A DNA stretch of 64,000 nt from Bugula neritina (lineage: Eukaryota; Animalia; Bryozoa): NCBI GenBank assembly GCA_964035545.1, contig OZ037769.1:3639929-3703928 (forward strand). Direction: 5' to 3'. A model generated the notes under the pieces. That model did not search any database. It saw only the letters and a list, made by a program, of their open reading frames with translations, and was not told the origin of the DNA. The position numbers were made by a program, and so were the translations under genes. Numbering within the stretch: position 1 is the first letter of the stretch; each line of letters opens with the position of its first letter. Below are positions 21,594 to 41,911 of the stretch, piece after piece.

Positions 21594-21956
21594 TTAGTCT
21601 TTCGAAGATTTGTAAACATCTCCAGTTTTGGTGTCCACCGAGCGAGAGAATGGATTTTGAGGGAGATACTTCCAAATACCTTGTGCTTCATTTCTGCAAT
21701 AGAAATATCTTATATATAGTTCATTATCACTATAAAAACAACTTAATCTCTAAAATCTGATCAGTTATAGAATAAAATCAAAGCTATTACATAATCATGA
21801 CTTAGATGTTTAGCATCTGACTTACTCATTACGAAGGCAGCATCCACTGCCTGTATGCTCTTTTTCCACGCATGTAGTCCTACGTGAGGGTTGATTAGGA
21901 GCAGAGTCACGACTATCTGGGTAACAGTCACGCTCAGGACGAAGACCTTTATTCAT
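21594..21956 (-). CDS. Gene B1: 76-aa divergent member of the small His/Cys protein family
   Basis: Exons 21956-21826 and 21693-21594 with a phase-2 GT-AG intron. MNKGLRPERDCYPDSRDSAPNQPSRRTTCVEKEHTGSGCCLRNENEAQGIWKYLPQNPFSRSVDTKTGDVYKSSKD. Same 131-nt first coding exon and ag|aaATG context as B2. Shares NxGxR, YPD, H-x4-C and DxKTG motifs but lacks the CxC motifs. Confidence 0.62.
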
Positions 21957-24900
21957 TTCTAAAGCATAAACAAGTTTAACAACTTGGAAAAATTAATGAT
22001 ATTAACATGCAATTCAAGTTTGCCTATACTGAAAAAGCCCTGTCTGACTATCACTGCGGGAGTGATTGAGATAAAAAATCTCCGAGTTTCACTATTTTTA
22101 TTCACAAATGTAGAATGTGCGAGTTTCTTTTTAAATTGTTCTCAATTAATAAGATTCGTTTATAATTAAAAAGCATGAGTATAATATTTAATATGTTAAC
22201 TCAGCACAATATTCTTTATTTAAAAAAAATATTTATATCAGTTTTTCAAGAACTTTATACAAAGTTCTGCAAAGTGTTTTTAGTATAATAAGCTTCAGTG
22301 CAAATCTTACATAATTACTTGCTTGCATATGATTTATAAAGAGCACACTTATAACAGTTTATATATGCTATTAACTTAGCATGTTACTGTTTTAGATTTC
22401 GTTCAAGTAAAAAAAATATAATTAATTAACAAATAAGTTTGTAAGATTTGCACTGAAGCTTATTACTGAAAACGCTTTTGCAAAACTTTATATAATGTTG
22501 GTGAAATAATATGAAAAACATAAGAAACATGTGTGATATTTACTTAAAAAGTTAGATGCCAAAAATAATATATTTAAAGTCTATAAATTGCTGATTTTAA
22601 CAATTGCAATACACTTACTGATTTGTAGTTCACACTTTGTAAGACAAATTAAAATTACTATAACCTTCTTCTACAGCTGTCACTGTTGTTTATGGGTTGC
22701 TCCACTATATGGTGTGCTTTATATATAGAAGCAAAGATTTTGTCATGCTGATGAAAACATATATGATCGTCAGCATTCCATCAAACTGCTTATTCTTTCC
22801 TTCCACTGGATTTTTTTATTTCCTGCAACTTTAAGTTTAAAAAAACAAGTTTTCAAAGAGAATTAATAAAATCTTTTGTGTTTAGCTATTATATCTTATT
22901 CACACCCCAGATCTATAGCTGATTCACATTTACATAATAATTTTTATTCCACAACTCAATTCTGGGGAAATTGAAAGTTCCACACAACTACATCATGATT
23001 TGACATCTTATGTTATTCAACAACAAAATTAATGCTAGCATTGATATTAAAATGTAACCAGTTTTGACACTTTAATGCTGAAAATGATTTTGATTATTTT
23101 AATTAAAGGCAACTTAATTATACATGAAATTAACTGATAGTAAATGCTAATGTTATAGTATATGTTCATCTGTTAAATAAAATAAAGCACGAAGCTATGA
23201 ACCCGCTGTTTTATTCATAGTTAAATGTATATTTTTTATGATATAAATAATAGTTTACTCAATGGCCATGTATGTCATGAGGTACAACTATGAACATATA
23301 ATAGTTCTAAGTTTTAAAGTAGCATCTATTTAACTTCATTAACCTTTTGGATAAATCTTTAAGTTGTATAAATTGAAACACATGAGAGTTTTGTTAAAAA
23401 ACTAGATTTGCTAGGGTACATGTTAAGGATTTGTCAAACGTAAGTTGTTATTCTTTTAAAATATAATCTGATATAAAGCTTATTAAAGTACTTGTAGACT
23501 AGCTAACATTTCACTTACAAAATATTTGCGCTAAAAACAAGCCAACCTTATGTATGAGATATGATTGTCGCTAATTTCAAGCATGGTATTATGTATATAT
23601 GTATATATTATGGTTATTTAGGATTGCTGTCAACTTTAACTTTTCTATCATAAAAATATTCTTTTCTAATTTCATTTTAATTGTAAAATGCATTAAGAAT
23701 ATAACAGTGGTTAACCATGGCATGCTTGGGATGTGTAAATAAAGTCACACATATCAAATAAAAATAAATGCAACTGAAATAGGTTTGGTTGACACTAACT
23801 GTTCACCACAATTATTATAAAACTTTTAAGATGTTTAAATAGCTATATGCTAGCCACCCTCTCTAAACCTTTTACATTTGTAGATTATTTTTGATTTAAC
23901 TGCTGTTCAATGATTGAATAAATTGTAAAACTATACTAGAAATCAAATATATCTACTATAGAATAATAATTTTATAGTTGTAATTGGTCGGCAATAGCTA
24001 TATATATGACTTCTTTTTCGCTTTTATCTATAACAGTAACACTGTAAAACACCAGGCACTGTTTGATTTGGTTATGATTATTATTTTATGTTGGGTAAAC
24101 ACGCTTTGAATTAAAGCATTAATCATCTTATGTTTGAAACTCCAGTAAGCATAATGTATAGCATATAATGCTCACTGGTAGGGGTAGGAATTAAATGACC
24201 TCAGTATAGAATCAATAATATAATTCAACTGTTATGTCAGCAAGTTTTGAAAGTTGGAATTTCATCTGGAAAATATTTGCTGAGTTTTTGGAAAGAGCAG
24301 TAGTTTCCATTTTCCTAAATTCAACAAAAAGAAATTAGTCAACAATATTTAATTGCAGTTTCAGTTAATCAATTCAATATAGGTATCTACCTATGATTAT
24401 ATATAGCTCAATGTGTGCATGCTTGTAGCTATTGTTTTACTGTTATTGCTATAGGCCTAAATGTTGTATGCTTATCCATTAATTATTCACCGTCTTTCCA
24501 TGATTCATTCTCAGATCGCTCTATAGTGAGATAGATCTACGGAAAGAAGTAGGAAAGACAGTCTTCATAATATGTTCTCTGCTAATAAAAGTGATAGCCT
24601 AATTTATTGTTAATTACTAAGCAAAGTATTGAATAATCTCTATTGCTACCTTTTCAGATGTCAAAACTTTGACTTTCATCGCAATGATGAAGAAAACTCA
24701 TTTATATAAAATTATAGATAGTATAAGGAGGTGCAAAAATTGAGAGCAATTAAATTGAATTTAAATGTGCAGTAAAACTTGCTAGCTTTTACTAGTTATT
24801 TGCTGCATAATTTAAAGCCTAACAATCATCTAGGTGTAGGAATAATTTGCAAGACAGCTATTAATTTTATATAAGCTGTCAAGCTAAAATATTAAAACTA

Positions 24901-25439
24901 GTTACTTATCTTAAACAGGCCAAATTACTTTGCACTAAAAGCTTTGCTGCGTATAGTTTATATATAGCTGGAGTTAAATTTTAGACTTCAAAAATCTTGT
25001 TTTTCAACAAATCATAGTATTAAAGTACCCTTCACTTAAGAGGAGGCAACTATAATTTATATGGGCTATAATTATAGCTATAAGCACATTAGCTATTTAG
25101 CAATCAATACAACAGTTATAGCCTATAAGTACCAAAATAAAAAATGGCGTCCATGTGAGAAGCGTCTAAGAGGGAAATTTAGCCTAGCGTCTAACTGGGA
25201 TGAAACCAGCTATATATAATAGCAAATGGACAGACCAATCAATAAGTTTGCTGTCGTGCTGCAAACTGTAGCTATTTAAAAACGGTTAAAAACAGAAACC
25301 TATTATACAAAATTTAGCTTTTTTGAAATTAAAATTACCTAAATATATTTCAACTGTAAATTAAAGCAATCATACAATGACATAAAAAACTCATTATAAA
25401 AACTAGAATTATATTTATGCAATAATTTAGAATTAGTTG

Positions 25440-25850
25440 AAATACCAACAGAACACCAGAAAATAATTGTTCACTCTAAAAGTCCATCCTTATCTCCAAT
25501 GTTGAACAATAGACAAAAAACATGACAGTAATTTTGATGTCACTATGGGAAGCTATGACAGTGCTGAAACCTGCCAACTAATTGGAATCTATCTGCTTAA
25601 CCTAGTAACTACTGAAATGAATCTAGAATGCAATTTAGACCTATATAGAGATGATGGACTTATAGTTTGTGAAGGAACACCTAGACATATAGAACAGAAC
25701 AAGAAACAAATCTGCAACTTTTTTTAGAAAATTTAATCTCTCAATCACAATAGATGCCAATAAGAAAGTTGTAAACTTCCCAGATATAACGTTCAACCTA
25801 ACTAACCAATCCTACAAATCCTATACAAAACCAAAAAACACTATCCTACA
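25440..25850 (+). mobile_element. Penelope-like retroelement reverse transcriptase relic
   Basis: FDVTMGSYDSAETCQLIGIYLL...LYRDDGL...EQNKKQICNFF, then after a frameshift NLSITIDANKKVVNFPDITFNLTNQSYKSYTKP. These are motifs typical of Penelope-type RT, here disrupted. Confidence 0.85.
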
Positions 25851-26671
25851 ATACAAACCCAGACCTCAGCAAATCACGGCTGACATGCTATCTCCCGTGC
25901 ACCCATTCATACACCAACTTCACAGAAGTTTTCTGACGATCAAATATTTCAGATAGAATCTTAATTTCTGTCTGATCTATCTATACTGTCTATCTACATG
26001 TGACTGCTCCACATAACTAAATAAAAGGAGATGTTGATAGCTGTGAGTAACATCATTACATCTAACAGAAGCCATATCTTACAATCCATTTTAACTATTC
26101 AAATTATGTTTATATTGCTACTCATACACATGTACCATACAACTAAGGCCACTTTTTTATATTCTCTCTGGTTAGAGAACAACACTCATAGTCCTCATGT
26201 AAATAAAGGCAGTAATCAGGTGCAGTCATTACTAAGCAACTCACACCAACATAAACAAAATAACCTCCATCAGTATAAAATAAATGCAACTTAACTGTGA
26301 GCAAGTTTTAAAAATTGAAATTTTACTGTAGTAATTGGAAAATAAACTATTTTGACGTTGTGGAAAGAGCAGTAGTTTCTATTTTCCTAAATTAAACAAA
26401 AAGAAATTAGTTAAATGCACTTAAACAAACAATATTTCACTGCTGGTTCAGTTAATCAATTTATTAGATATTTACCCATGATCGTAGCTCTATGTGTGCA
26501 TTATGCTTATATAGCTATTGTTTTATTGAATAAGTCTATCTATTGCTAGCTTAATTAAATATCTTGTATAATATTATTACACAATCTTTATGCAAACTAA
26601 ATCTTTTTACTTCATATAAGTTGAAACTCATATTTTATCACTTACATAACGATGACTTATACTGAGCAACT

Positions 26672-26893
26672 AAAAAAAAACTCACGCAAGTTTATAGTCA
26701 CTATCCTTGTGAAAAACTCCTGGTGAAAAGGGTTTTGTTAAAGCAGTCTAAGGACTTATCTAAATGAGGCACAGGAGTAATTATGACTGGATACTCTTTC
26801 TAACATTACCAATGGCCTTTGTCTGGGCTCGAATCCATGACCTCTTGTTTACTAGGCAAATGCTCTAACCCTTAGACCACGGCTGCTCCCTAC
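26672..26893 (-). mobile_element. tRNA-Thr(AGT)-like SINE, family 1
   Basis: Head ...gcctagtaaacaagaggtcatggattcgagccc resembles the tRNA-Thr(AGT) anticodon and T arms. TSD ACTGAGCAACT at 26661-26671 and 26894-26904. Confidence 0.85.
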
Positions 26894-27893
26894 ACTGAGC
26901 AACTCAAAGCTGCATAAAAGTGTTTAGATAAAACCAGCTATACAAGTGTTATAGCGCTTTAAAAAATTGTGTTAAGACTAGTCGACATTAAAATTTGTTA
27001 TTTCCGAACATTTTTTGTTTAATATTCATAAAATTAATGAATCAAGATGATCACATTTGTACATGATTGTTATAAATATTGCAATGTAACGTATTGCTCA
27101 CTCTAAAATCTGTGTTAGAATTAATCATGCAATAAATTAGAATTAGTTGAAATATAAATATCCAAAATGTGTTATACATATATGTATTTAGAGTATTTTA
27201 TAGTCCACTTTAATTTCAACAAAAAAAATACTGCAGTAAAAAATAAAATCTAAAACTTTTATTTATTTATTCATACAAAACGAAATTTTGTTTTCATTCT
27301 ACTGCCTGATGAATGTAAATGCATACTGCTAAATGTAAGCATAGACTGTTAAATGTAAGTAAATTTAGATAAATCCAAGTGTACATATATTATATAGGTA
27401 TAGTTGATTGCAAGCTAGATACTACAACTCCTAAGTATATATACTGCTGAGTGTAAGCATATACAGTTGAATCTAAGTTTATAGATAATACTATGTGTAA
27501 ATATATACACAGTGAGTGTAAGTGTATATATACTACTATATGTAGGTATATATACTACAAAGTGTAAGTACGAGGTATATGCAGTTACACCTGTCATCTA
27601 TTGAGAGCCTCATAGGTTATTTAACAAGCCTCATTCTATGATAATATTACATACTCCATTGCTTAGTTATCCTCTCTCAAATTTCAATGAAGAGGAAAAC
27701 TTATTGGAATCTTAAATTACAGTGAATCAGCAAAATTGTGGAATATTGCAAGAGCGCATGCAATACTTTATTGCTTATTGTTTTTACATTATATGTGTGC
27801 TTATTGTATACTGAGTTTGATTCAGCAGTTTCATTAAGGATTTGATGTTTGAATAAATTACTAGCTGCAGAAACATGTGAAATAGATAATACA

Positions 27894-27933
<40 letters not shown>

Positions 27934-27936
27934 CAA

Positions 27937-27983
27937 TCTGTGGACAGCAGCTGTTTCGGGATTTGTCCCCTCATCAGCACAGA
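27937..27983 (-). ncRNA. Minimal type I hammerhead ribozyme
   Basis: Minus strand: UCUGUG-CUGAUGA-G-GGGA(CAAA)UCCC-GAAA-CAG(CUG)CUG-UC-CACAGA. Intact core, 6-bp stem I, stem II, short stem III, GUC cleavage triplet. Confidence 0.88.
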
Positions 27984-28117
27984 ACAGAGTACCATGGCCC
28001 ACACCTTCGCAATAGTAGAAACTTATAGTTTTACTAAAGCATATTTAAAAGGTGTGTAAACCCAAGCCAGAGTGCTCAAGTGACTCTAGGGGTCACCTAG
28101 GAGTCACGAGCATTGCA

Positions 28118-28630
<513 letters not shown>

Positions 28631-29520
28631 ATTATATTATTTCACAACCACATAAATTATATTGTTGTACATTTTAATTTTTTGTCCCGTTACAAGACAA
28701 CAACGCAAACAGAAATTAGTCTTTTGTGAAGCTATATACAGCATATTATGTACAATATTGCGTATAATATTGCTAAGCAAATAATAATCTAATGCTTTCT
28801 AATAGCATTTGTAAGAAGCCCCAGGACTTTTATTTATTACTAAAGTTTGTGGAGTTGAATGTTGAAAGAAAATTGGAAAAAAGCTTGTGTTTGAAAGACT
28901 ATAGATTAAAATTATTTTTGTGTATTTTAAAACTGTCTATTTTATCCGAGGCAAAGTTCAAAAAATTGTAAATTTACCTTCATAGAGTTTATAAAATATT
29001 ATAAACTATATAACATAACTGATGAAGTGTTGAAATAGTTTATGGTATAATAAATAATTGAGTTGGTAAGCATCAAATGAATATGCTATGAATTTGCTGG
29101 GCTTGCTATAATTATTGTGTTTATAAATCTTAGTTATTTCATTAGTTTTATGAAATCGGAAATCCCCCTTCGAATTTCTAATCATGAAGTAACAATCATA
29201 AGATCAGATAACCCTAAACCTATATACACTGATTGCACCAATAATTTATTACAGAGTCTGCATGTATAGTTAGTGACTTGGCCTTAAAAACAACTTATTA
29301 TAGGAGATTTTCATCTTCTGAAACATATTTGAAATTAGTTGACGGTATAATATGTTTTACTATGACATTTTATTGAGAAATAGATAAGATTTTCTATTTT
29401 ACAAATTATATTGTCAAATAGTTAACTATGTCATAATTGTTGCAAAAGCTGCTGTTTTGTGATCATGACAAAACTACCAGTGTGCTAAATTAAAAAGAAA
29501 AAGTTAACATGTGCTATATT

Positions 29521-30040
29521 TTAGCAAAAGCATTTAAGAATAAGACAGACAACTCCTGTTTTAATATCCTTCCATCTTGCATAGTGGCATCTCCAATCAG
29601 TATGCTTGAGCCAAGCTCCATTTTGATACTTCCCACAGTTGCAGTTTCTTACTAAATAATCTCCACTGCAACAAATTTTAGGAATATAGGTTGTTCTAAG
29701 TCAAGCACTCGTTACTTATCTTCCATTGTAATTATGAGGCATTATAGAGGTTGTCATACAACCACATTACAATATAACAGTGCACTATACTATAGTGCAC
29801 TGTTAGAGTTTTCGTACAACATCATATACTATAGTGCACTGTTGTATAGTTGTCATGAAACAAATTATAAGACACTCTAATTTTTTCTTATATATAAATA
29901 TGCACTCACTTTCTAGCAAATGTACAGTCAGATCTTAGATGCTTAGGCTCAATACTAAGAGATTGATGCAAATGCGGGTTTCCAAATGAGTCGAGATCAT
30001 CTGGGTAAAAATGGTGGCACCGCGGACCAGGGTTGGTCAT
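29521..30040 (-). CDS. Gene B2: 91-aa His/Cys-rich protein with two H-x4-C...CxC repeats
   Basis: Exons 30040-29910 and 29665-29521 with a phase-2 intron (GTGAGT...TTGCAG). MTNPGPRCHHFYPDDLDSFGNPHLHQSLSIEPKHLRSDCTFARNGDYLVRNCNCGKYQNGAWLKHTDWRCHYARWKDIKTGVVCLILKCFC. Clear paralogy with B3. Confidence 0.78.
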
Positions 30041-31117
30041 TTCTGAAACAACCAAACAGAGTTTATTAAAAACATCTGCTGCATGTACACAAATATATTT
30101 TTGAAAATTTAAATATTTATCTGATGCACCTTTTTATCACTGTTTGTTTATTATTTATTGTATAATCTATAGCCTATCTAAAGATCATAAGCAGTTAACC
30201 ATAGCATGATTTTTTCAATTCTTCTTTCAAGATTTTTAAGGCAACGATATAAAATATGTATTTAAATATAATTATATTCTAATACGCTAGAGTTGAAAAA
30301 TTGAATAATTTAAAAAAAGTAATTTGCTTCTTGTTAGAATGACAATTGCTGTTTGCTGTGCAAATATAATGTTAACAGTTTTGACTTAGTATACCTTCAA
30401 TAAGATATTAACTACAGTTTGTTACAATTTTAAATTGACGCATGGAATTAAATAAGAAATGATAATCAGAATTTGTACTGAAGCCAAGCACTGACAAAAC
30501 TTCGAAAACATTTTTAAAATGTTATTAAAATTTTAGAGAGTTATAGAGAAAAACAAGTAAAACACTTTTTTAATGTTTTATTAAAATGCTTAGTTTAGCC
30601 ATTGTATTATAGACTTACCACAATTTGCAAGTTGCACTTTATAAGAAGAAATAAACCTATGACCTTTTTATATAACAGCCACTCTTGCTTATGAACCGTG
30701 CCATTATAAGGTAAGTTTATATATAAGAGTAAAAACCTAATCATGCTGATGAAAGCATTATTTAGTATTGCCCTATGCAATCTATTGATTTTGTACTTTC
30801 TTTTGTTGGTGTTATGATTTGGAAATTTTCGACACTAATAAAAAAAAAAATTGCTGTGCTGCTGTGTTAAAAAAATTAATTTTGGAAATCTAGGTTTTGC
30901 ATTAGAATTACAATCTTTTAATCATATTTTAACATCGTATATATCATGATGCTCTCACTTTATGCTCAGAAATGACATTTTGGGATTGAGCACTTTACAA
31001 AACTATTATAGTTGATTGCCAACCCCATTACTCTTAGAGCTTCTTAATGTTATAACGGCGTAAATTTATACACATTTTAATATTTATTCTTTAGTAAAAA
31101 CATAGGTATTTGCTATT

Positions 31118-31182
31118 GGCCATGTTACTCTGTTCTGTGCTGATTAGCGGACAACGCTGAAACAGCTGCTGTTTATTAGATT
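31118..31182 (+). mobile_element. Degenerate second copy of the hammerhead-bearing repeat
   Basis: ggccatgttactctgttctgtgCTGATTAgcggacaacgctGAAAcagctgctgtt matches the reverse complement of about 27935-28000. Core G8 is mutated and stem I is lost. Confidence 0.75.
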
Positions 31183-31186
31183 TAGT

Positions 31187-31271
31187 TCTGTGTGTCTGTG
31201 TGTCTGTGTGTCTGTGTGTCTGTGTGTCTGTGTGTCTGTGTGTCTGTGTGTCTGTGTGTCTGTGTGTCTGT

Positions 31272-31308
<37 letters not shown>

Positions 31309-31345
31309 TGTGTGAGTGTGTGAGTGTGTGAATGTGTGTTTGAGT
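31187..31345. repeat. (TGTGTCTG)n + (TG)n compound microsatellite
   Basis: Direct observation. Confidence 0.97.
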
Positions 31346-31364
31346 GTCATCTAGCTTGGAAAAT

Positions 31365-34300
31365 CATACCAAATGCTAAAGATTCACTATTACATCATCT
31401 AGCTTGGAAAATTGGAATTCCACTTGTAAAATCCTGCTGACTTCATGGAAAGAGCAGTAAGGATTCATTGTTCTAAATTTAGCTGCAAGACAATAGTTAG
31501 ATGCATTTCAACAGACAATGCCATGACTCACGTGTTAAGTTAATCAATTGAACAAGCTTACCAATGAGCTTCATGCGTGTGCCTGCTAAGTAACGTGTTG
31601 TTGATTGAATAGTTAGCCTCAAATATTGTGTAATATTATTACAAAATCCTAGCTTACACAATTTGAAAAAAATATTTTTAAGCAAACCTAATTGAACTAC
31701 AAGTTGTGCTAGAGATATTTAGTCATATGCTCATACTATAGCTCTTATAATAGCAAATAGGTAAACCTTTTAATAAATGTGCTGTAGTATTACACATTGT
31801 ATTTATACACTGTAATGACAGAAATTTATGATACAGCATGCAGCTTGTTAAAACTAAAATTACTTGAATAATATACTTCAGCTATACAAAGACTAATCAC
31901 AAAACTTTTTACAAGACAACTCATTAAAACTAAAGTTATTCATATAAACATGAACTTGAATTCATTAAAAACATTAACATTCCAATTTGCTTCTAACACT
32001 TTATGTCACGTAAATTTTCAATCCCAATATAAGAAATGTATCAAAAACTGTAATACTGCATTTACACAAAATATGATATTATACTCCCTCTGCTGACGAA
32101 TATGAGTGTAATGAGTGTAAGTCTATACTGCTAAATGTAAGTATATATACAGATAAATGTAAGTGTATACTATAAATTATAAGTGTATACTATAAACATA
32201 TGTAGTTGTAGCTGTTAGAAAGCCTCTCAGGTATTTGACAAGTTTTGTTTTAGGGACTGCTTATATACCTCACTCCTTAGTTACCTTATCTTGTATGCCA
32301 ATGATGATGAAATGGAAATTTTTTGTAATTCCGTATTCCAGCGAATCAGCAACATTTTAGAACTTTCATGATGTCTGCAATTGGTAATTTATCATATATT
32401 AATTGGTTGTAACTTATGTGTGCTTAACGTATAATACTGATTTCTAGTAGTATTAAAGGACTTGGTGTTTGAATAATGCCTTTGTTACAGAAACATGTTA
32501 AATAGATAATATAGTTAAAGTGAGTATTAGCATTAAAACATAAAGAGATGATGGACTCAGAAACTTTGGGTCTTATAAAAAAACAGTGTATACCGAGAGA
32601 CAATGTACAACATTATCAGATTGCAAAAAAGGCCGGCTTTCCAAATATTGTTATATACTTTTATATACTTTCAGTGCAGTTGCTATTCACACAATTGATA
32701 TGAAATTGCTGGTTTCATGCAAGTCATAAGCTGTACATCTACTAACGAGTTCTAGTTTCATGTGAAGTCATTGAAGCCAATATATTTTATTGTGGCTGAA
32801 AATCGAATGACGAAGACTCAAATTTCACTCTGGGAATTCCTACATCATTGGAAGATTTACTGTACGTAACCAAATATTTACTGTGATAAGCACTCAATGA
32901 CAAAACATCTTTATGTTACAGCTAAATTACAAATAACAACAAAAGTATTTGCATATACAAATTTATACAATATTTATTTATATTTGAGAATTCTATTTAA
33001 TACAATGGGATATATTTTGAACGGTTTTCAATGCTGATCTAGGCAAACATAGAATATATACAGTACTTTATTTTGTTATTGTTGCGAGCGATGAAAGCCA
33101 GAGAAGGCTTTTGTCTCTACTGTAAAAGTGTGCTGATTAGCGCTACTAATTAAAAACATGCAATAATCTTTGAAGCCATTACGGACACGCGGACGTAGTT
33201 ACTTGGCAACTATAGAAGATATACAATACATTACAAGCATCACGGCGCGCGTGGAAATGTTGAGTGGGATTTCCCAGACTCGAATAAAGCTGTAATGTAT
33301 TTTAATAAGGCGCACGCAGGGTGTCCGTATTGCATCATGTAAATACCATTAATTATTGATTTTTGCTAATCTTCCCAAGTTATATGTGAAATTTTATACG
33401 GCTAATATTACAGTTTTACTCTGATAGTTTTACAAGTATAAACTTTTCACACAACTGTCAGTTTACACAACAAGACTATAGTAAAAGGCTCAGTTTTGTT
33501 CTACTTGTTGATAAAAACTTCATTTACTTTCAAACCTATATTATATTCTAATAAAACTATAAAGTATTTTAAGCAAAAAAGCTTATTTATGCAACTACCA
33601 AGGGTTTTAACTAATCTAGCCTCAGTTGAACAAATTACATATTTAAACAAGTTTTATTTTTAGTTACTAAACTTGCAACTTAATACTACAATATCCACCT
33701 ACTAGTCTTACATACTGCTAAAGGTTATAGTCAATGCTCAGTGATATATTATATGCTACACAAGGCAGTTGTATTGTGGCATATCCTATGACTAATGTGC
33801 CAGTTTATTTATATGCACTATTATTAAAAGCAGGTGTGTGAAATAACATTTGTGATAATATTATAATATTATGGCATACTGCTGATGATTTAGTTAAGAA
33901 ATAGCTTGATTGCATAATATGTAAACTAATCTATATTGAGAAACTGCTGTTCCAAAGAACAATCTAACGGAAACTGTTTTAAAGCGATTCTCACTATAAT
34001 ATAATATACAAGTAGCTTTCCATATAAATTGATTGTAAACCAGTGCAAAAAGGCGTATACTTTTATAATGTCACACATTTGAAGCTTAGAAATTTAGAAA
34101 TATAGAAAAAATTAGCATTGTTATACAGTTTAACATTTCTTAAACATTTTTAAAGAGAACAAAGTTACTGCTGCACAAATTCAAAGTCACATGAATACAT
34201 ATTTTTATTGAATATAAGTTTAAATAAAGTAAATTGCAGTAGTCATATAGTAATGAAAATAATAAAATGTAGCAAATTATTATTTAAAATCAAGATTAAA

Positions 34301-37300
34301 AAGTTGCATACATTTGAAGGTCTAGTAGTGTACTTTAGGTATTGTATAAACTGAAGATCATATTGTTAAAACAACTTTGAGTTGTTATTACTTGCTTCAA
34401 CTTGGAAAGTTGGAATTCCATTTTGGAAAGAAAATTGCACAATCATTAGATGAAAGAAGTTGCTAACAAAAAGTTTTACACCTTTGATGACTCATTTACT
34501 GCTAGTGATTAGCCATCTTTGGGAACGTAAATGGCAGGCAGTAACAGTAGATTATAATTGCTTAGAGATAAAATATATTTCTAGATGTAAGCAAACCAAT
34601 AGTACATGAACTATATGCACATGTGTTGTCAACTAAACTACATTATAGCTTCAGTAGTTATAGCTTTTTTAGGTTTAAGTTTGATATCGATTTTGAAAAT
34701 CTTTTCAAAAGATATTTTGCACTTTGAATTAAAGCATGAAAGTAACCTATTATAGCAACTGAGATATGATGCAATGTAATGCATTCTCTAAATTTGAAAA
34801 GAATTTATATATACTGCTTAACTATAAAACAAACATTTTTCTCAATTAAAAGAAGTTTGATTTTGAAATCAGAAATATTATTATACTGTGAATACAATGA
34901 ATACTGTGTTCAAAGTTGTATATATATACACAAGTGTTAATTGAAACTGCTCTGAATATATGGAGGAATAACATATAGCACATGCCAGTTATAGCAGTAA
35001 AAATTGAACTATACCTCTAGCTAGCATAGTATTACTAGTATAAAACCATACCAAATGCTAAAGATTCACTATTACATCATCTGGCTTGGAAAATTGGAAT
35101 TCCACTGGAACTATCCACTGACCTCATGGAAAGAGCAGCAGTATTTGTATTTCTAAATTTAGCTGCAAGACAATAGGTTGATGCATTTTAACAGGCAATA
35201 TTTGTGACTCACACGTTAACTTAATCAATTGAACAAGCTTATCAATTAGCTCCATGTATGCTTGCCAAGTAACATGTTATTGATTAAATCTTCAGCCTCA
35301 AATATTGCGTAATATTATTACAAAATCCTCGTACAATTTGAAAACTTATTTCTAAACAAACCTAATGGAACTACACGCTGTGCTAGAAATATTTAGTCAT
35401 ACGATCATAGCTTTTATGATAGTAACTAAGTATAAGAGCTTTAATAAATTTGCTATAGCATTACGCATTGTGTTTACGAACTGTAAAAACAGAAAGTTAC
35501 GATACAGCGCGTTATAGTTTGTTGAAACTGAAACTGCCTGAATGATCGCAACAGACTTCCGCTACAAAGACTAATCACAAAACTTTTTAAAAGATGACTC
35601 ATTAAAACTAGAGTTATTCATATAAATAACCTGAAGTCATTAAAAGTAGTAACATATGCCAAGTTGTTTTTAACACTCTCTGTCACGTCAGTTTGTGACT
35701 ATAGAAGCAAACATTCCAATAACAAATGTATCAAAGGCTCCAAGTCCTGCATTTACACATAACATGATATATTATACTCCCTCTGCTGATGAATATGAAT
35801 GTAATGAGTGTAAGTGTATACTACTAAATGTAAGTATATATACAGATAAATGTAAGTGTATACTATCAAGTATAAGTGTATACTGCTGAAGCATTATACC
35901 TACTATAAACATATGCAGTTGTAGCTGTTAGAAAGCCTCTCAGGTATTTGACGAGTTTTGTTTTAGGAACTGCTTATATACCTCACTCCTTAGTTACCTT
36001 ATCTTGTATGCCAATGATGATAAAGTGGAAAATTTTTGTAATTCTGTATTCCAGTGAATCAGCAAAATTCTAGTTTGAAGGACTTGATGTTTGAATAATG
36101 CTTTTGTTACAGAAACATGTTAAATACATAATATAGTTAAATTGAGTATTAACATTAAAACATAAAGAGATGATGGACTCATATACTTTGGGTCTTCCAT
36201 AAAAAAGAGTGTAGACAATGTACAACAATATCAGATTGCAAAAACAGGACAGCTTTCCAAGTATTGTTATATACTGTTATATACTTTCAGTGAAGTTGCT
36301 ATTCACAAAATTGATATGAAATTGCTGTTTCTATGCAAGTCATATAAGCTTTACATTTACTAACGAGTTCTAGTTTCAGTTTTAGCCACAATAAAATAAT
36401 ATTTTATTGTGGCTAAAAATCGAATGACAAGACTCAAATTTCCTTCTGGGAATTCCAACATTATTGAAAAACTTACTGTATGCAACCAAATACTTACTGT
36501 GAAAAGCACTCTATAACAAAAAAAATTGTATGTTACTGATAAATTACAAATAACAGCAAAAGTATTTGCATATACATATTTATACAATATTTATTCATAT
36601 TTAAAAACTTTATCTAATAAAATAGGGTAAATTTTGAACGGTTTTCCATATTGATCTAGGCAAAAATAGAATATATACTGTACTCTATTATACTACTTGC
36701 GGGCCGCGAAGGCCAGAGCAGGCTTTGCCTCTACTGTAAAAGTGTGCTGATTAGCGCGACTAATTGTAAACATACGTAATCTTTAGAGCCATTACGGTTA
36801 TGCAGTGAATAATTGGCGTATTTACTTGGCAACTATAGAAGATATACAATACATTACAAGCATCACGGCGCGCGTGGAAATGTTAAGTGGGATTTCCCAG
36901 ACTCCAATAAAGCTGTAATGTATTTTAATAAGGCGCACGCAGAACGCTGTATTGCATCATGTAAATACCATTAATTATAAATTTTTCCTAATCTTCCCAA
37001 GTTATATGTGAAATTTTATACCACTAATATTCCAGTTTCATTCTGATAATTTTACAAGTATAAACTTTTTTCACAATAACTGTCAGCTTAAACAACAAGA
37101 CTATAGTAAAAGGCTCAGTTTTGTTCTACTAATAATTGTTAAAAATAACTTCATTTACCTCCAAACCTATATTATATTCCAATATAACTATAAAATATAT
37201 TAAGCAAAAAACAGCTTATTTATGCAGCTACCAGGGGTCTTAACTAATCTAGCCTTGGTTGAACAAATTATAGACTTGAACAAGTTTTATTTTTAGTTAC

Positions 37301-38109
37301 TAAATGTGCAACTTAATCACTACAATATCCCCCTACTAGTTTTACATACTGCTAAAGGTTATAGTCAATGCTCAGTGATATATTATATGCTACAGAAGGC
37401 AGTTGTATCGTGGCATATCCTATGACTAAGGTGCCATTCTATAAACAAGTGTATGAAATAACATTTTCAATATAATGTAATGTTGGCATATTGATTCAGT
37501 CGAATGATTTAGTTAAGAAATAGCTTGATTGCATAATATGTAAACTAATCTATATTGAGAAACTGCTGCTCAAAAGAGCAATCTAACGGAAACTGTTTTA
37601 GAGCAGTTTTCACTATAATATATAAGTAGCTTTCCACAAATTGATTGTAAACCAGTGCAAAAAGGCATATACTTATGTAATGTCACATAATTATTTAAAA
37701 ATATAGAAAATATAGCATTGTTTTACAGCTTAACATCTTTTAAACATTTTTAGAGGGATCAAAATTACTGCTGCACAAGTTCAAAGCCAATTGAAGAAAT
37801 ATTTTTTTTAATATAGGTTTAAATAAAGTAAATTACATTAGAGATAAAGAAAATAATAAAATGCAACAAATTATCATTTTTAATCAAGTTGCGTACATGT
37901 GAAGGTCTAGTAGTCTTCTTTAGGTATTATATGAACTGAAGATCGTATTGTTAAAACAACTTTGAGTTGTTATTACTTGCTTCAACTTGGAAAGTTGGAA
38001 TTCCACCATGAATCGTGGAAAGAAAATTGCACAATCATTAGATGAAAGAAGTTGCTAACGAAAAGTTTTAAATCTTTGATGACTCATTTAGTGCTAGTGA
38101 TTAGCCATC
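31365..38109 (+). repeat. Tandem duplication of an apparently non-coding 3.1 kb block (31365-34517 vs 35047-38109)
   Basis: Both copies begin cataccaaatgctaaagattcactattacatcatct and end tagtgattagccatc. Older, more diverged partial copies at about 24245-24470 and 26300-27890 share ggaaagagcagtag and downstream blocks. Confidence 0.92.
33266..33275. promoter_or_regulatory. Consensus kappaB site GGGATTTCCC (second copy at 36889-36898)
   Basis: Exact match to GGGRNWYYCC within a CpG-rich patch retained in both duplicate copies. Motif match only. Confidence 0.3.
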
Positions 38110-39542
38110 ACCCACACAGAGAAGTATGATAATAAATTGTATATGTATATTTGTAATCTAAACTACATGATGGCAAAATGCGCTGGAGTTTGAGATTTTA
38201 TCTAGGTGATGCTCAACAAGTAATTTTCAACACTTTTCAGCATGTATAGCTCTACGCCTGTCATCCTACATAAGCAAGGCTATACAAGATACATCTGACT
38301 GTCCATATACTCACTCAATTATGTAGTCATTATTACAACAATTACAATAGATATGGATCTATAAGACACAGTTAAATTTCTGTCCCACCCTGCAGTAATG
38401 GTTATGATGTTAGTATAGGTAACCCCAGCTACCATTTTTGATACATTTTGAACTTTAGAATGACTAATTTTCGGCAGCTAATCTTTTTGTCTTAAACAGC
38501 CGCTTAGTCAAAAACCACTATTTACTATTTTCATCTTGTTTACCTTTTAGCGCTATCTTAGCTAATATAATCAACTGGAAAAAGCAAACGCTTTTATATT
38601 TAGCTTTGCTAGAATATGATACAATATGATATGAGCCTCACATTCACGCGTTTCCATGACTGCTCATTATTCAAATGGATACCCGTAAAGATTAGTAATT
38701 GTGGTTTGCACTAACTTATAGTCGGGTTTTATTCGGTGTAACTATTCCCTTTAGCCAAATGAAAAAATTCATTCGCCTAATGCAATAATGGAAACGTAGT
38801 GATTATTCATAGCTAATCTATTTGTCTTAAACAGCTGTTTATAGTCAAACATAATCAATGTAAATAAAGAAATGCTTGCTTAAATTTAGCTTATCTAGAA
38901 TGACTGTTTAGTCCCATATTAAAGGTTATTTCACAATATTTTTCAACAGCAACAAACACACAATAATAATGACAGTTTATGGTTCTCATATATCGTGCAA
39001 TTATTGAAGTTAAAACAGAATAGGTAAAATAAGTTAATAATTTGCACTATTGTAATGGTATATTATTATGGTAATATTTTAGCAATGAACCATTATCAAA
39101 GCTGTACTATATAAGAGTAATACAGGAATAAGTCTTATATTCCTTACAACTATAAATGATTAATATATCAAGGCTTGAAATAGAAGATATACAGTACATG
39201 CTTGCTCACCATTTTTTATTTCAGAAAATTCTTTGAAATTTTAAACTTCGAAGTGAAATAACTTGCTCCTATCAGTTATTCATTTGGTTAATATGTTGTA
39301 GTTATTGTTACTTAAAATTATCACATTCAACATCCACAGAACAAAGCACAATTTGTTTGATTTTTTAAAACAAACATAGTTTTGCATAGGTACACAATTA
39401 AATAATTAAAACAGTATATTATTTCAAGCATTGCAATTAGAATTAGTTATAGGAGGGATTGAATGAATATTTTATTTTATTCAATAAAACAAAACAGTTC
39501 AAATAAAATTTTGTATTTGTTGTTACACAAAAAAGCTTTAAT

Positions 39543-40325
39543 TTAAAGACAAGAACACTTAAAAACAAGATAAATTTTTGAAGTTTTTTGGTCTTTTTTT
39601 CTAGCATAGTGACAAATGAGGTTCTGGTGTATAATCGAACTTTCACTACGACGTCCAACTTTTTCACAGTAGCAATAACGAATCAGTTTGCATCCTCTAA
39701 AATTGCAATGCATGTGTGTTATCATAATACACTTTCAAACTATATTTACAAAGTATAATATAAGCTATAACTAATCTTGTAGCTTATACTGTATATAGTT
39801 CATAAAATGAAAAAAATGACTTTAAAGTTGGCAATACTCTTTTACCCTGAAGGAATTATGCGTCTCAACAAAATACTAATAATGCATCATGCCAGTATAA
39901 TTGACACCTTGCACTAAAAGCACTATCAAGAGTACTGAAACAGCAATGCACAGTGACACATTGACGCTATATATAGCAGGTGTCAATCTGTCAGGTTTCA
40001 TTTTTTAGTTTATAGCTAGATCTCAAAGCGAACTTTAAATTGTCAATAATTCGATTAAAGAAGAGTTAAAACAAAATACCAACATTAATACTTTTCAACA
40101 TACATATATACAGTAGTTGTTATGAGATTTCATAACAAAATTCATCAGTTAAACTGAGACTATTATGACGCATATTATTTTGATTACGTACTGGCGTACA
40201 TATCGACATCTGACATCCCGATGCTCTTCAATATTCTTGTACGTGCAAAGTGGCTGTTCAATGCCACCCATTGGAGTATCATCATAATGCAGGTGATCAC
40301 GAATTCCTCGATTTGTTCCCGCCAT
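39543..40325 (-). CDS. Gene B3: 95-aa His/Cys-rich protein with two H-x4-C...CxC repeats
   Basis: Exons 40325-40192 and 39696-39543 with a phase-2 intron (GTACGT...TTTTAG). Start context ag|ccATGg. MAGTNRGIRDHLHYDDTPMGGIEQPLCTYKNIEEHRDVRCRYVRQGCKLIRYCYCEKVGRRSESSIIHQNLICHYARKKDQKTSKIYLVFKCSCL. Candidate upstream UTR-exon donors near 40503 and 41654. Confidence 0.78.
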
Positions 40326-41911
40326 GGCTAAAAGTTAGAGATTAAATTTTTGGAATGATATTAAATCCTATCCTAGATTATAGGTTAATTCAAATTAAAA
40401 TTATTTTATTTACCCTGACAACATTACTGTTACCCTGCATGGTGACATTTTATTATCATTGTACAATTTAGTTACATGATAAGCTATAAAATATGTTACT
40501 CACCGGATAGAGTGTTGATACAATAATATTCAGTTTTTCAAATAAACTACCTTGTTCTCTCAACAGTTGCTAAATGAGCTAATTTGCAGTTTATTCTTGA
40601 CTTCATTCTACTCACTGTGTCAAATATTGCATCATATTGCAATAACAGAAACTGAACATGATAGGACAATTCCATCTGTAACACATCTAAAGGTGGAACA
40701 ACTCATCGATAGTTAACTACTGATACCTATGGAGAGTATAGAACATACAATTCATACAAGTTATATATTTTGTTGAAACCTGAAAAATACTGTTCCATAA
40801 GGTTGTATAAAAAGACTCTGTAATTTCAATATGGTATAGCATACAGAAATAAGGAATTCATTCAACAAGAAATGCATTTAGTTGATAATTGTGCATGGGA
40901 ATAGATAATGATGAAGTTAAAGAAATTTCACTATGTTGGAAGTATTAAAAGCTGCACATTTGTGTGCAATTTTGTTGCATAAATGTATAAAAAACACTGC
41001 TACAAAAAACTTTATTACTGTATATAATACTTACTTTAATATAGCCTTTCTTTGTTTATATTATAATTATAGATGCCCTTTTCTAAGTAACAAACTGCTG
41101 TCAAATTGTGGGGAAAATCTTCTAAATTTGGAATTTTCGCATGAATAAATTAAAAAGTAGAAAAAATTCATCTGCTCAAATTAAATAGAAATTCTTGTTC
41201 AATATATATACGTATATCTGGCGTTGTGACACTGATAGAGTGTCTACAAGCATTGTAACAGATGAGTATATATACTTAACTGTATATATCTATAATACTT
41301 ATATATTAATAATATATAAGCTCATATGCTTGTTGGGGCCTAATATTATAACATTTTTGTATATATATGCTATATAGACTTTTAGTTAAAAAATACAAAT
41401 TGGGATCTAATATATATTTTTTTATTATAGCTTGTCATTATATTGTATTTTTTAATTAATAAGACATGCACATAAAAATAATATTTAAAGCTTAGTATTA
41501 GTGGCACAGCAAACCATACTGTTTAACATGAAGGAGTGAATTTCAGCTAAGATGGGTGTCTAGTTATACATAAATGTTTCCAGATCAAATTGAAAACCTC
41601 CCAAACTATATGTGACTGTCATGTTTAAAATTTGCTATCATCAGGAGTACTCACTGGAAGTAAAGACTTTAGAGCTGCGAACCACGTATATAGTTTAAGC
41701 ATATGCTTATGCTCTATACACAGAGAGAAATATTAGTGTTAGAGTGAACATTAGCTGACAACTAAAACAGCTCGTTTTTTGGATCCCTAAATTGACCAGC
41801 AGTGAATAGAAATTAGTGTCAGGTACTGTTCACAGTGAATAGTATGTTAGATCAATGTTGATATAAAGAGTTGTGAAGTTGATTCTTTGTATTTATCACA
41901 ATGAGCCAAGT

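Follow-up and report, generated by a model that had tools for sequence, protein, structure and literature searches.

Two intact members and one decaying copy of an unnamed family of small, putatively zinc-binding proteins in the bryozoan Bugula neritina

Introduction

Positions 3,639,929 to 3,703,928 (forward strand) of contig OZ037769.1 in the Bugula neritina genome (GenBank assembly GCA_964035545.1) form a stretch of 64,000 nucleotides, referred to below as the window. An initial annotation of the window described three small genes, B1, B2 and B3, between positions 21,594 and 40,325, and proposed that they encode a mini-domain with two zinc sites that belongs to no known family. This raises the question of whether the three are genuine genes, what kind of protein they specify and whether they are peculiar to this locus. 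We give a probability of roughly 60% to the reading that all three belong to an unnamed family of small intracellular proteins in which two zinc-clasped hairpins make up a recognition module, with B2 and B3 intact and B1 in decay. On sequence grounds, this family is real and undescribed, and its named members come so far only from cheilostome bryozoans.

Results

B2 and B3 are intact genes with two coding exons

All three genes lie on the minus strand of the window, which is AT-rich with about 30% G+C. B2 and B3 are intact, each having two coding exons separated by a GT-AG phase-2 intron and a predicted product of about 90-95 aa that contains two E-x-H-x4-C...C-x-C units. In B3, coding exon 1 (40192..40325, 134 nt) starts with the ATG at 40325, ends in phase 2 at the donor CA/gtacgt, and encodes a disordered N-terminal tail followed by the E-x-H-x4-C of unit 1. 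The intron occupies 39697..40191 (gtacgt...ttttag), and coding exon 2 (39543..39696, acceptor ttttag/A, stop codon 39543-39545) supplies the remaining C-x-C of unit 1 and then unit 2 in full (H-x4-C, hairpin and C-x-C). In B2, coding exon 1 is located at 29910..30040 (131 nt, ATG at 30040, phase 2, donor AA/gtgagt), the intron at 29666..29909 (gtgagt...ttgcag) and coding exon 2 at 29521..29665 (acceptor ttgcag/T, stop codon 29521-29523), and the protein ends in K-C-F-C. An AATAAA that is a possible polyadenylation signal was found 62 nt past the stop in B3 (39476..39481), and an AATAAA also follows the stop of B2 at a distance of 147 nt (29369..29374). B1 has a coding exon 1 at 21826..21956 (131 nt, ATG at 21956, phase 2, donor GA/gtaagt) and a degenerate second exon, which is considered further below.

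A pyrimidine tract and an AG stand exactly 2 nt before the ATG in all three genes, the acceptor-like AG being located at 21959-21960 in B1, at 30043..30044 in B2 (tgtttcag) and at 40328..40329 in B3 (ttttag). The initial annotation had reported this acceptor together with a first coding exon of 131-134 nt and a phase-2 intron, and all of these features were found in the three genes at the places given there. The peptide motifs quoted for B1, B2 and B3 are likewise all present, and the four H-x4-C...C-x-C strings given for B2 and B3 agree letter for letter with the sequence. The N-termini, read from the sequence, are hydrophilic, in agreement with the reported absence of a signal peptide.

The proteins are built from a doubled His-Cys3 unit

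Both B2 and B3 contain the full pattern of the family, E-x(1-2)-H-x4(+)-C...R-x-C-x-C followed by E-x-H-x4-C...C-x-C. A profile-profile comparison of unit 1 with unit 2 using hhalign gave a probability of 94% and an E value of 9e-8, and both units begin with E-x-H. The internal repeat noticed earlier in B2 and B3 is therefore a real doubling of a unit with one His and three Cys. When 12 exon-2 sequences were aligned (mean column identity about 40%), the residues R, C, C, H, C, Y, D, C and C proved invariant. In exon 1, the invariant residues are Y, E, H and C. The eight His/Cys positions, which we take as putative metal ligands, are invariant across paralogues and species while nearly everything else varies, and they are common to Bugula, Watersipora and a homologue from the European Nucleotide Archive (ENA), P0017, described below. 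In two Watersipora proteins, the only two His residues are the ligand His.

The family is spread over at least 20 loci

The window exons were searched one at a time, and a deposited relative, P0005 (KAF6029933.1), was used in place of the spliced product. With exon 2 of B2 and of B3 as peptide queries, 10-12 further loci were matched in the same genome, with E values of 2e-7 to 3e-3 for B2 exon 2 against its paralogues. A profile of 12 exon-2 peptides revealed 12 strong loci (E 5e-16 to 7e-23, with 1e-20 at B2 and 5e-16 at B3) and another 8 in which the match is weaker and limited to unit 2. The exon-1 peptides of B2 and B3 matched only themselves in the genome, exon 1 being too divergent, and the first exons of the paralogues were identified from their sequence pattern and splice signals. 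In all 12 genes examined, the exon that starts with the ATG is 131-143 nt long and ends at a phase-2 donor, a few codons after the C-x-Y of unit 1. The donor is GTRAGT across the examined copies, with gtacgt in B3, and a good acceptor lies a few codons before the first C-x-C in every one of them.

Six of the genes form a tandem cluster at C2:26.262-26.277 Mb and three another at C6:14.532-14.536 Mb, and a single gene is located at C5:6.04 Mb. A longer subtype is represented by five tandem copies at C7:11382925-11428606 (loci L034-L039), and further family copies were found at C7:14.73 Mb and C2:26.56 Mb. The longer C7 subtype resembles the deposited protein KAF6034952.1 (225 aa), and its last exon, near-identical in three copies, encodes C-x-C, an insert of about 20 residues and a whole unit 2.

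The three genes had been regarded as a local expansion inside a cluster of CD225 and WSC genes, a picture that does not survive the finding of at least 20 loci, mostly on other chromosomes. The surroundings of the window (C5 3.6-3.83 Mb) are rich in CD225 and WSC matches, whereas none occur near the other family clusters, and the neighbours of the Watersipora loci are only further family members. We therefore rejected co-clustering with CD225/WSC as a property of the family. Because these matches are confined to the window region, the adjacency to family A, from which a functional link had been speculated, is local and gives no evidence of such a link. The main clusters of the family lie in other parts of the genome, and the window contains two ordinary intact genes and one decayed copy.

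The arrangement AG-NN-ATG occurs in 8 of the 12 copies from the same genome, in the two copies of the sibling species and in two from Watersipora (one subgroup). Since a canonical 3' splice site is thus conserved 2 nt before the ATG, the genes very probably have an upstream non-coding exon and a conserved intron in the 5' untranslated region; a spliced leader is the less likely explanation. We know of no report of a spliced leader in bryozoans. A comparison of B3 with the sibling species did not reveal a conserved upstream non-coding exon.

Relatives have been deposited from two bryozoan genera

A search of 1.84 billion representative proteins using the exon-2 profile gave 17 matches at E 1e-3 or better. 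Ten of them are named, and all ten come from Bugula neritina (GenBank, "hypothetical") or Watersipora subatra (RefSeq, "uncharacterized"). The other seven are four JGI metagenome fragments with a single open reading frame (ORF), one protein from a Logan assembly, and P0017 and P0016, both from ENA. P0016 was judged to be spurious, as only a repeated H-x4-C-K-Y motif matches. The deposited relatives from B. neritina (KAF6029933.1, KAF6039735.1, KAF6039737.1 and KAF6034952.1) and W. subatra (XP_067949236.1, XP_067949187.1, XP_067949371.1 and XP_067950020.1) are homologues with profile E values of 1.8e-17 to 6e-5, and agree with the window genes in the eight ligands, in where the intron lies and in having an AG 2 nt before the ATG. 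However, in the Watersipora proteins the spacing within unit 1 is longer and variable, and there is an extra Cys. P0005 (90 aa) is 59% identical to exon 2 of B2 and 56% identical to exon 2 of B3 (E 1e-18 and 5e-16), and the donor, acceptor and phase of its gene are as in the window genes. The expectation that annotation pipelines would miss such genes was not borne out, because spliced models of identical exon structure have been deposited (KAF6029933.1 and others; Watersipora RefSeq). A word-index protein search with B3 exon 2, scored within its listed ORF, gave no match, and one with the full-length family alignment returned only four already-known relatives. In the literature, we found no paper naming these accessions or describing the family.

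One locus of the GenBank draft labelled B. neritina (L028; GCA_010799875.2, VXIV02001775.1) is syntenic with positions 22855-40256 of the window and carries family copies, among them the gene of P0005. Nucleotide identity is only about 80% (76-88% across the locus), and the draft therefore probably represents another member of the known cryptic-species complex; we refer to it as the sibling species. The arrangement of copies in L028 also differs from that in the window and includes an extra inverted family member, as would fit two species of this complex.

B2 and B3 keep the invariant residues, and B1 is decaying

The ratio of nonsynonymous to synonymous substitution rates (dN/dS), which had been proposed as a check on the genes, was well below 1 in close paralogue pairs (0.26-0.42 across the seven closest). 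For exon 2 of B3 against the sibling-species copies it was 0.38-0.50. Alternatively, the two genes might be silent relics or artefacts of prediction, with reading frames that happen to have survived in a recently duplicated region and give rise to no protein. Such an explanation could draw on the only public sequencing run examined, which is of DNA and contains no splice joints, on the clear decay of the neighbouring copy B1 and on the high dN/dS of B3 as a whole (0.57-0.90). However, B2 and B3 have intact frames, canonical splice sites, all eight ligands and a downstream AATAAA. They are saturated at synonymous sites relative to each other and have nonetheless kept the invariant set of residues, and orthologous or co-orthologous copies are intact in the sibling species in spite of the divergence of the DNA. 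We consider it very unlikely that the two genes are relics.

B1 presents a different case. Its exon 1 keeps the Y, E, H and C positions of the family, and apart from exon 1 it shares with the family only the D-x-K-T-G turn. The C-x-C of unit 1 is missing, as are both the H-x4-C and the C-x-C of unit 2, so that of the eight ligands B1 retains the H and C of unit 1 and at most one further Cys. The degenerate exon 2 (21594..21729) starts at 21729 or 21693 and ends at a premature stop (21594-21596). The sibling-species copy at the B1 position in L028 still encodes C-Y-C, H-x4-C and K-C-W, and a base-by-base comparison with it revealed that the former C-Y-C codons of B1 now read ttctattgcag and form the acceptor at 21693. 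Furthermore, the second His has been lost, the Cys following it has been deleted, and the frame stops before the last C-x-C. The acceptor in the ancestral place, which gives an exon start at 21729, shares its frame with the one at 21693. No constraint was seen between B1 and the sibling copy, with dN/dS values of 1.9 in exon 1 and 1.2 in exon 2 (few sites). With most ligands gone, a premature stop and dN/dS above 1, B1 was rejected as a functional third member; it had been listed as a gene of equal standing, to which its degenerate second exon, showing no purifying selection, does not correspond. Judged by its sequence, B1 is a decaying member of the family and not a working one.

The predicted structure contains two Cys-flanked hairpins and resembles no known fold

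The structure of P0005 was predicted with AlphaFold2 from a 28-row alignment, giving a mean predicted local distance difference test (pLDDT) score of 70. An alignment that mixed exon-1 fragments with full-length sequences misplaced H-x4-C-x-Y onto unit 2 and was not used for folding. Residues 1-26 are disordered in the model, and it is only there that pLDDT falls below 50; over residues 31-90 it is 79-88 (10-residue block means). Strands are predicted at residues 39-43, 46-50, 61-63, 70-76 and 81-87, and the ligand positions are H33, C38, C51, C53, H64, C69, C88 and C90. Each H-x4-C directly precedes, and each C-x-C directly follows, a predicted beta-hairpin, with C38 and C51 flanking the first hairpin and C69 and C88 the second. 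When exon 2 of B2 was folded alone, an equivalent hairpin was obtained (27-32/39-44, pLDDT 79-90), flanked by C26 and C45. Antiparallel pairing would bring C38 opposite C51, and C69 opposite C88, at the open ends of the hairpins, a geometry which we infer would fit two sequential H,C,C,C sites.

Pfam gave no domain match (exon pieces to E 10; full-length relatives to E 1), and the family profile matched no PDB sequence at E up to 10. The best hits of a Foldseek search of the PDB (ribosomal uL6, E 0.075) and of a wide VIA-align search (alpha-crystallin/CS sandwiches, Z 4.6) were at noise level. The ESM Atlas returned template modelling (TM) scores of 0.45 or less by shape and only noise-level rows by features. 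The earlier statement that the domain cannot be assigned to a known family thus holds in Pfam, PDB sequences, Foldseek, VIA-align and the ESM Atlas. No transposase, integrase or mobile-element domain was matched in Pfam by the exon pieces or the full-length relatives, and the family copies, which are divergent, intron-bearing and clustered in tandem with a conserved intron phase, are not repeat-like. P0017, on its virus-like contig (see below), may nevertheless point to a viral link.

The proteins might instead be DNA- or RNA-binding zinc fingers of the WRKY/GCM1/FLYWCH kind, in which a beta-sheet bears a [C/H]-x4-C...[H/C]-x-[H/C] site. They would then act as transcription or chromatin factors and might go back to a mobile element or a virus. 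In WRKY-type fingers the ligands are arranged as C-x4-5-C-x22-23-H-x-H, the last two alternating on a strand. The H-x4-C-x(12-20)-C-x-C spacing of the family mirrors this pattern, a resemblance confined to the logic of the spacing and useful as a lead only. In both cases, a ligand pair four residues apart precedes a hairpin, a pair one residue apart lies at the end of the second strand, and the domain is small, basic (pI 8.4-9.6 in most family members) and made of beta structure. A further point in favour is that P0017, which lies outside the named bryozoans, adjoins a histone-fold gene on a compact contig. However, the order of ligands in the family is H,C,C,C rather than C,C,H,H, the pairs are separated by 12-20 rather than 22-23 residues, and the unit is duplicated in tandem. 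The family has no WRKYGQK-like strand, and its hairpins are shorter than those of WRKY. Pfam, at the thresholds given above, matched no WRKY, FLYWCH, GCM, THAP or BED domain and no transposase, zinc-finger chains are absent from the Foldseek and VIA-align lists, and the CaaX-like ends of some members (see below) suggest targeting to a membrane and not to chromatin. This explanation therefore seems unlikely to us, though it deserves to be kept in mind.

Zinc-ribbon and rubredoxin knuckles, in which zinc staples the ends of beta-hairpins through paired C-x2-C motifs at the hairpin turns, offer another comparison. Zinc-stapled hairpin ends (the zinc being putative in our family), a very small domain and structural Cys-rich sites are common to both, whereas the ligands of the family, H-x4-C and C-x-C, are located at the open end of a single hairpin. 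No zinc-ribbon chain was among the fold matches from Foldseek or VIA-align.

C-x-C motifs are typical of metallothioneins, and the family resembles these also in small size, in the absence of a signal peptide and in tandem gene amplification, as would be expected if its members were metal buffers or chaperones sequestering zinc, copper or cadmium. However, metallothioneins are very rich in Cys, have few or no aromatic or His residues and form no regular secondary structure in the absence of metal, whereas the family members contain only 6-8 Cys in 82-114 residues (about 7%) and have His ligands as well as aromatic residues. The conserved non-ligand residues R, Y, D and L and the confidently predicted beta-hairpins (pLDDT about 80-90) point to a stable folded domain with structural sites. 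We give a metal-buffering role very little credence.

Fusion, CaaX-like ends and a homologue on a compact contig

In the Watersipora protein XP_067948808.1 ("TRIM5-like", 376 aa), a RING finger and a coiled coil are combined with the family domain, which forms the C-terminus. Its gene comprises nine exons over 27.5 kb (L029:10001-37581; OY755167.1), and the domain exons keep the intron position of the family. It may represent a real exon-shuffled fusion or a chimeric prediction. A Cys/His-rich stretch in the protein is a candidate B-box. In this one model the family domain occupies the place that the C-terminal PRY/SPRY or NHL domains take in TRIM E3 ligases after the RING and coiled coil, but it is unrelated to them in sequence and size, the predicted fusion is a single one, and most family members are free-standing.

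Three copies of the C2 cluster, all on the minus strand, have C-terminal extensions with CaaX-like ends: C-I-I-S (L022:4604-4828), C-I-L-L (L022:1825-2028; conserved in the sibling-species protein P0003) and C-E-I-M (L005:1447-1638; conserved in the sibling-species protein P0001). These ends suggest that some members may be prenylated and targeted to membranes.

P0017 is an intron-less homologue of 82 aa with all eight ligands (E 4.7e-4), encoded at L032:4466-4714 on a 5352-nt contig (ENA ERZ13706889, NODE_7641). The genes of this contig are tightly packed, only 9-100 nt apart, and almost all share one strand; G+C content is 38-44%. Among the neighbours of P0017 are proteins with a histone fold (236 aa), with ankyrin repeats and with DUF5662. 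Such a layout is reminiscent of large DNA viruses or of some other compact genome. Scans of IMG/VR with P0017 and with the DUF5662 neighbour found no relatives. The homologues of the DUF5662 neighbour are unnamed proteins and one pearl-oyster protein, and do not fix the origin of the contig. An Atlas look-up of a 394-aa neighbour on the same contig gave a weak ZP-like lead below recognition level.

A more far-reaching explanation would be that the domain is a new zinc-clasped hairpin fold common to bryozoans and large DNA viruses, and that it serves as a fast-evolving recognition module in a host-virus arms race. The free-standing copies would then be decoys or adaptors, some of them prenylated, the TRIM-fused copy would provide the target-binding end of an E3 ligase, and the tandem clusters would be the record of host-virus conflict. 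We regard this explanation as distinctly improbable.

Other features of the window

A long simple repeat at 28052-28631 translates as I-Y-I-Y, and an AC-rich repeat at 31144-31350 translates on the minus strand as H-T-H-T/Q-T-H-R. Both are listed as ORFs (spanning 68-172 aa in the ORF list) and are not genes. The adjacent segments 31360-34878 and 34931-38109 both match one stretch of the sibling-species locus (L028, about 11.2-12.5 kb and 15.2-17.7 kb), a sign that a segment between B2 and B3 has been duplicated locally in tandem.

Discussion

According to the reading that we favour, a protein of this family would begin with about 25-30 residues that form a variable and disordered tail, followed by a basic all-beta domain of about 60 residues. 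The domain would be made of two tandem copies of one unit, E-x(1-2)-H-x4-C, a beta-hairpin and C-x-C, and in each unit the His and three Cys would clasp one Zn(II), so that each protein would have two structural zinc sites. The two hairpins, a rigid and basic pair, could serve as a recognition surface for a macromolecular partner, more likely a protein than a nucleic acid, and the family would have diversified as its genes were duplicated in tandem and positions other than the ligands changed quickly. That the domain is a zinc-stabilised recognition module is indirectly suggested by the basic pI, the CaaX-like ends, the TRIM-like fusion and P0017. The position of the domain in the fusion counts towards recognition because TRIM proteins carry their target-recognition domain at the C-terminus.

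Several points weigh against this reading. The model of P0005 is of moderate confidence and comes from a shallow alignment, and the clustering of the ligands is argued from hairpin geometry alone. The TRIM fusion is one predicted gene with long introns and may be chimeric. The overall dN/dS of B3 was calculated against its nearest relatives from few sites and indicates fast evolution, and the only sequencing run examined is one of DNA, in which the intron and its flanks form one contig of uniform depth. The functional part is an inference.

For the window itself the gain is the smaller one, as it contains two ordinary members and a decayed one. The family, in contrast, has at least 20 copies in the poorly studied phylum Bryozoa, and its domain has no match among described families and solved folds. 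If the two His+Cys3 clasps are true, the domain would be a new small zinc-binding module and a handle on lineage-specific intracellular biology, which could be related to immunity, given the TRIM-like fusion and the virus-like homologue.

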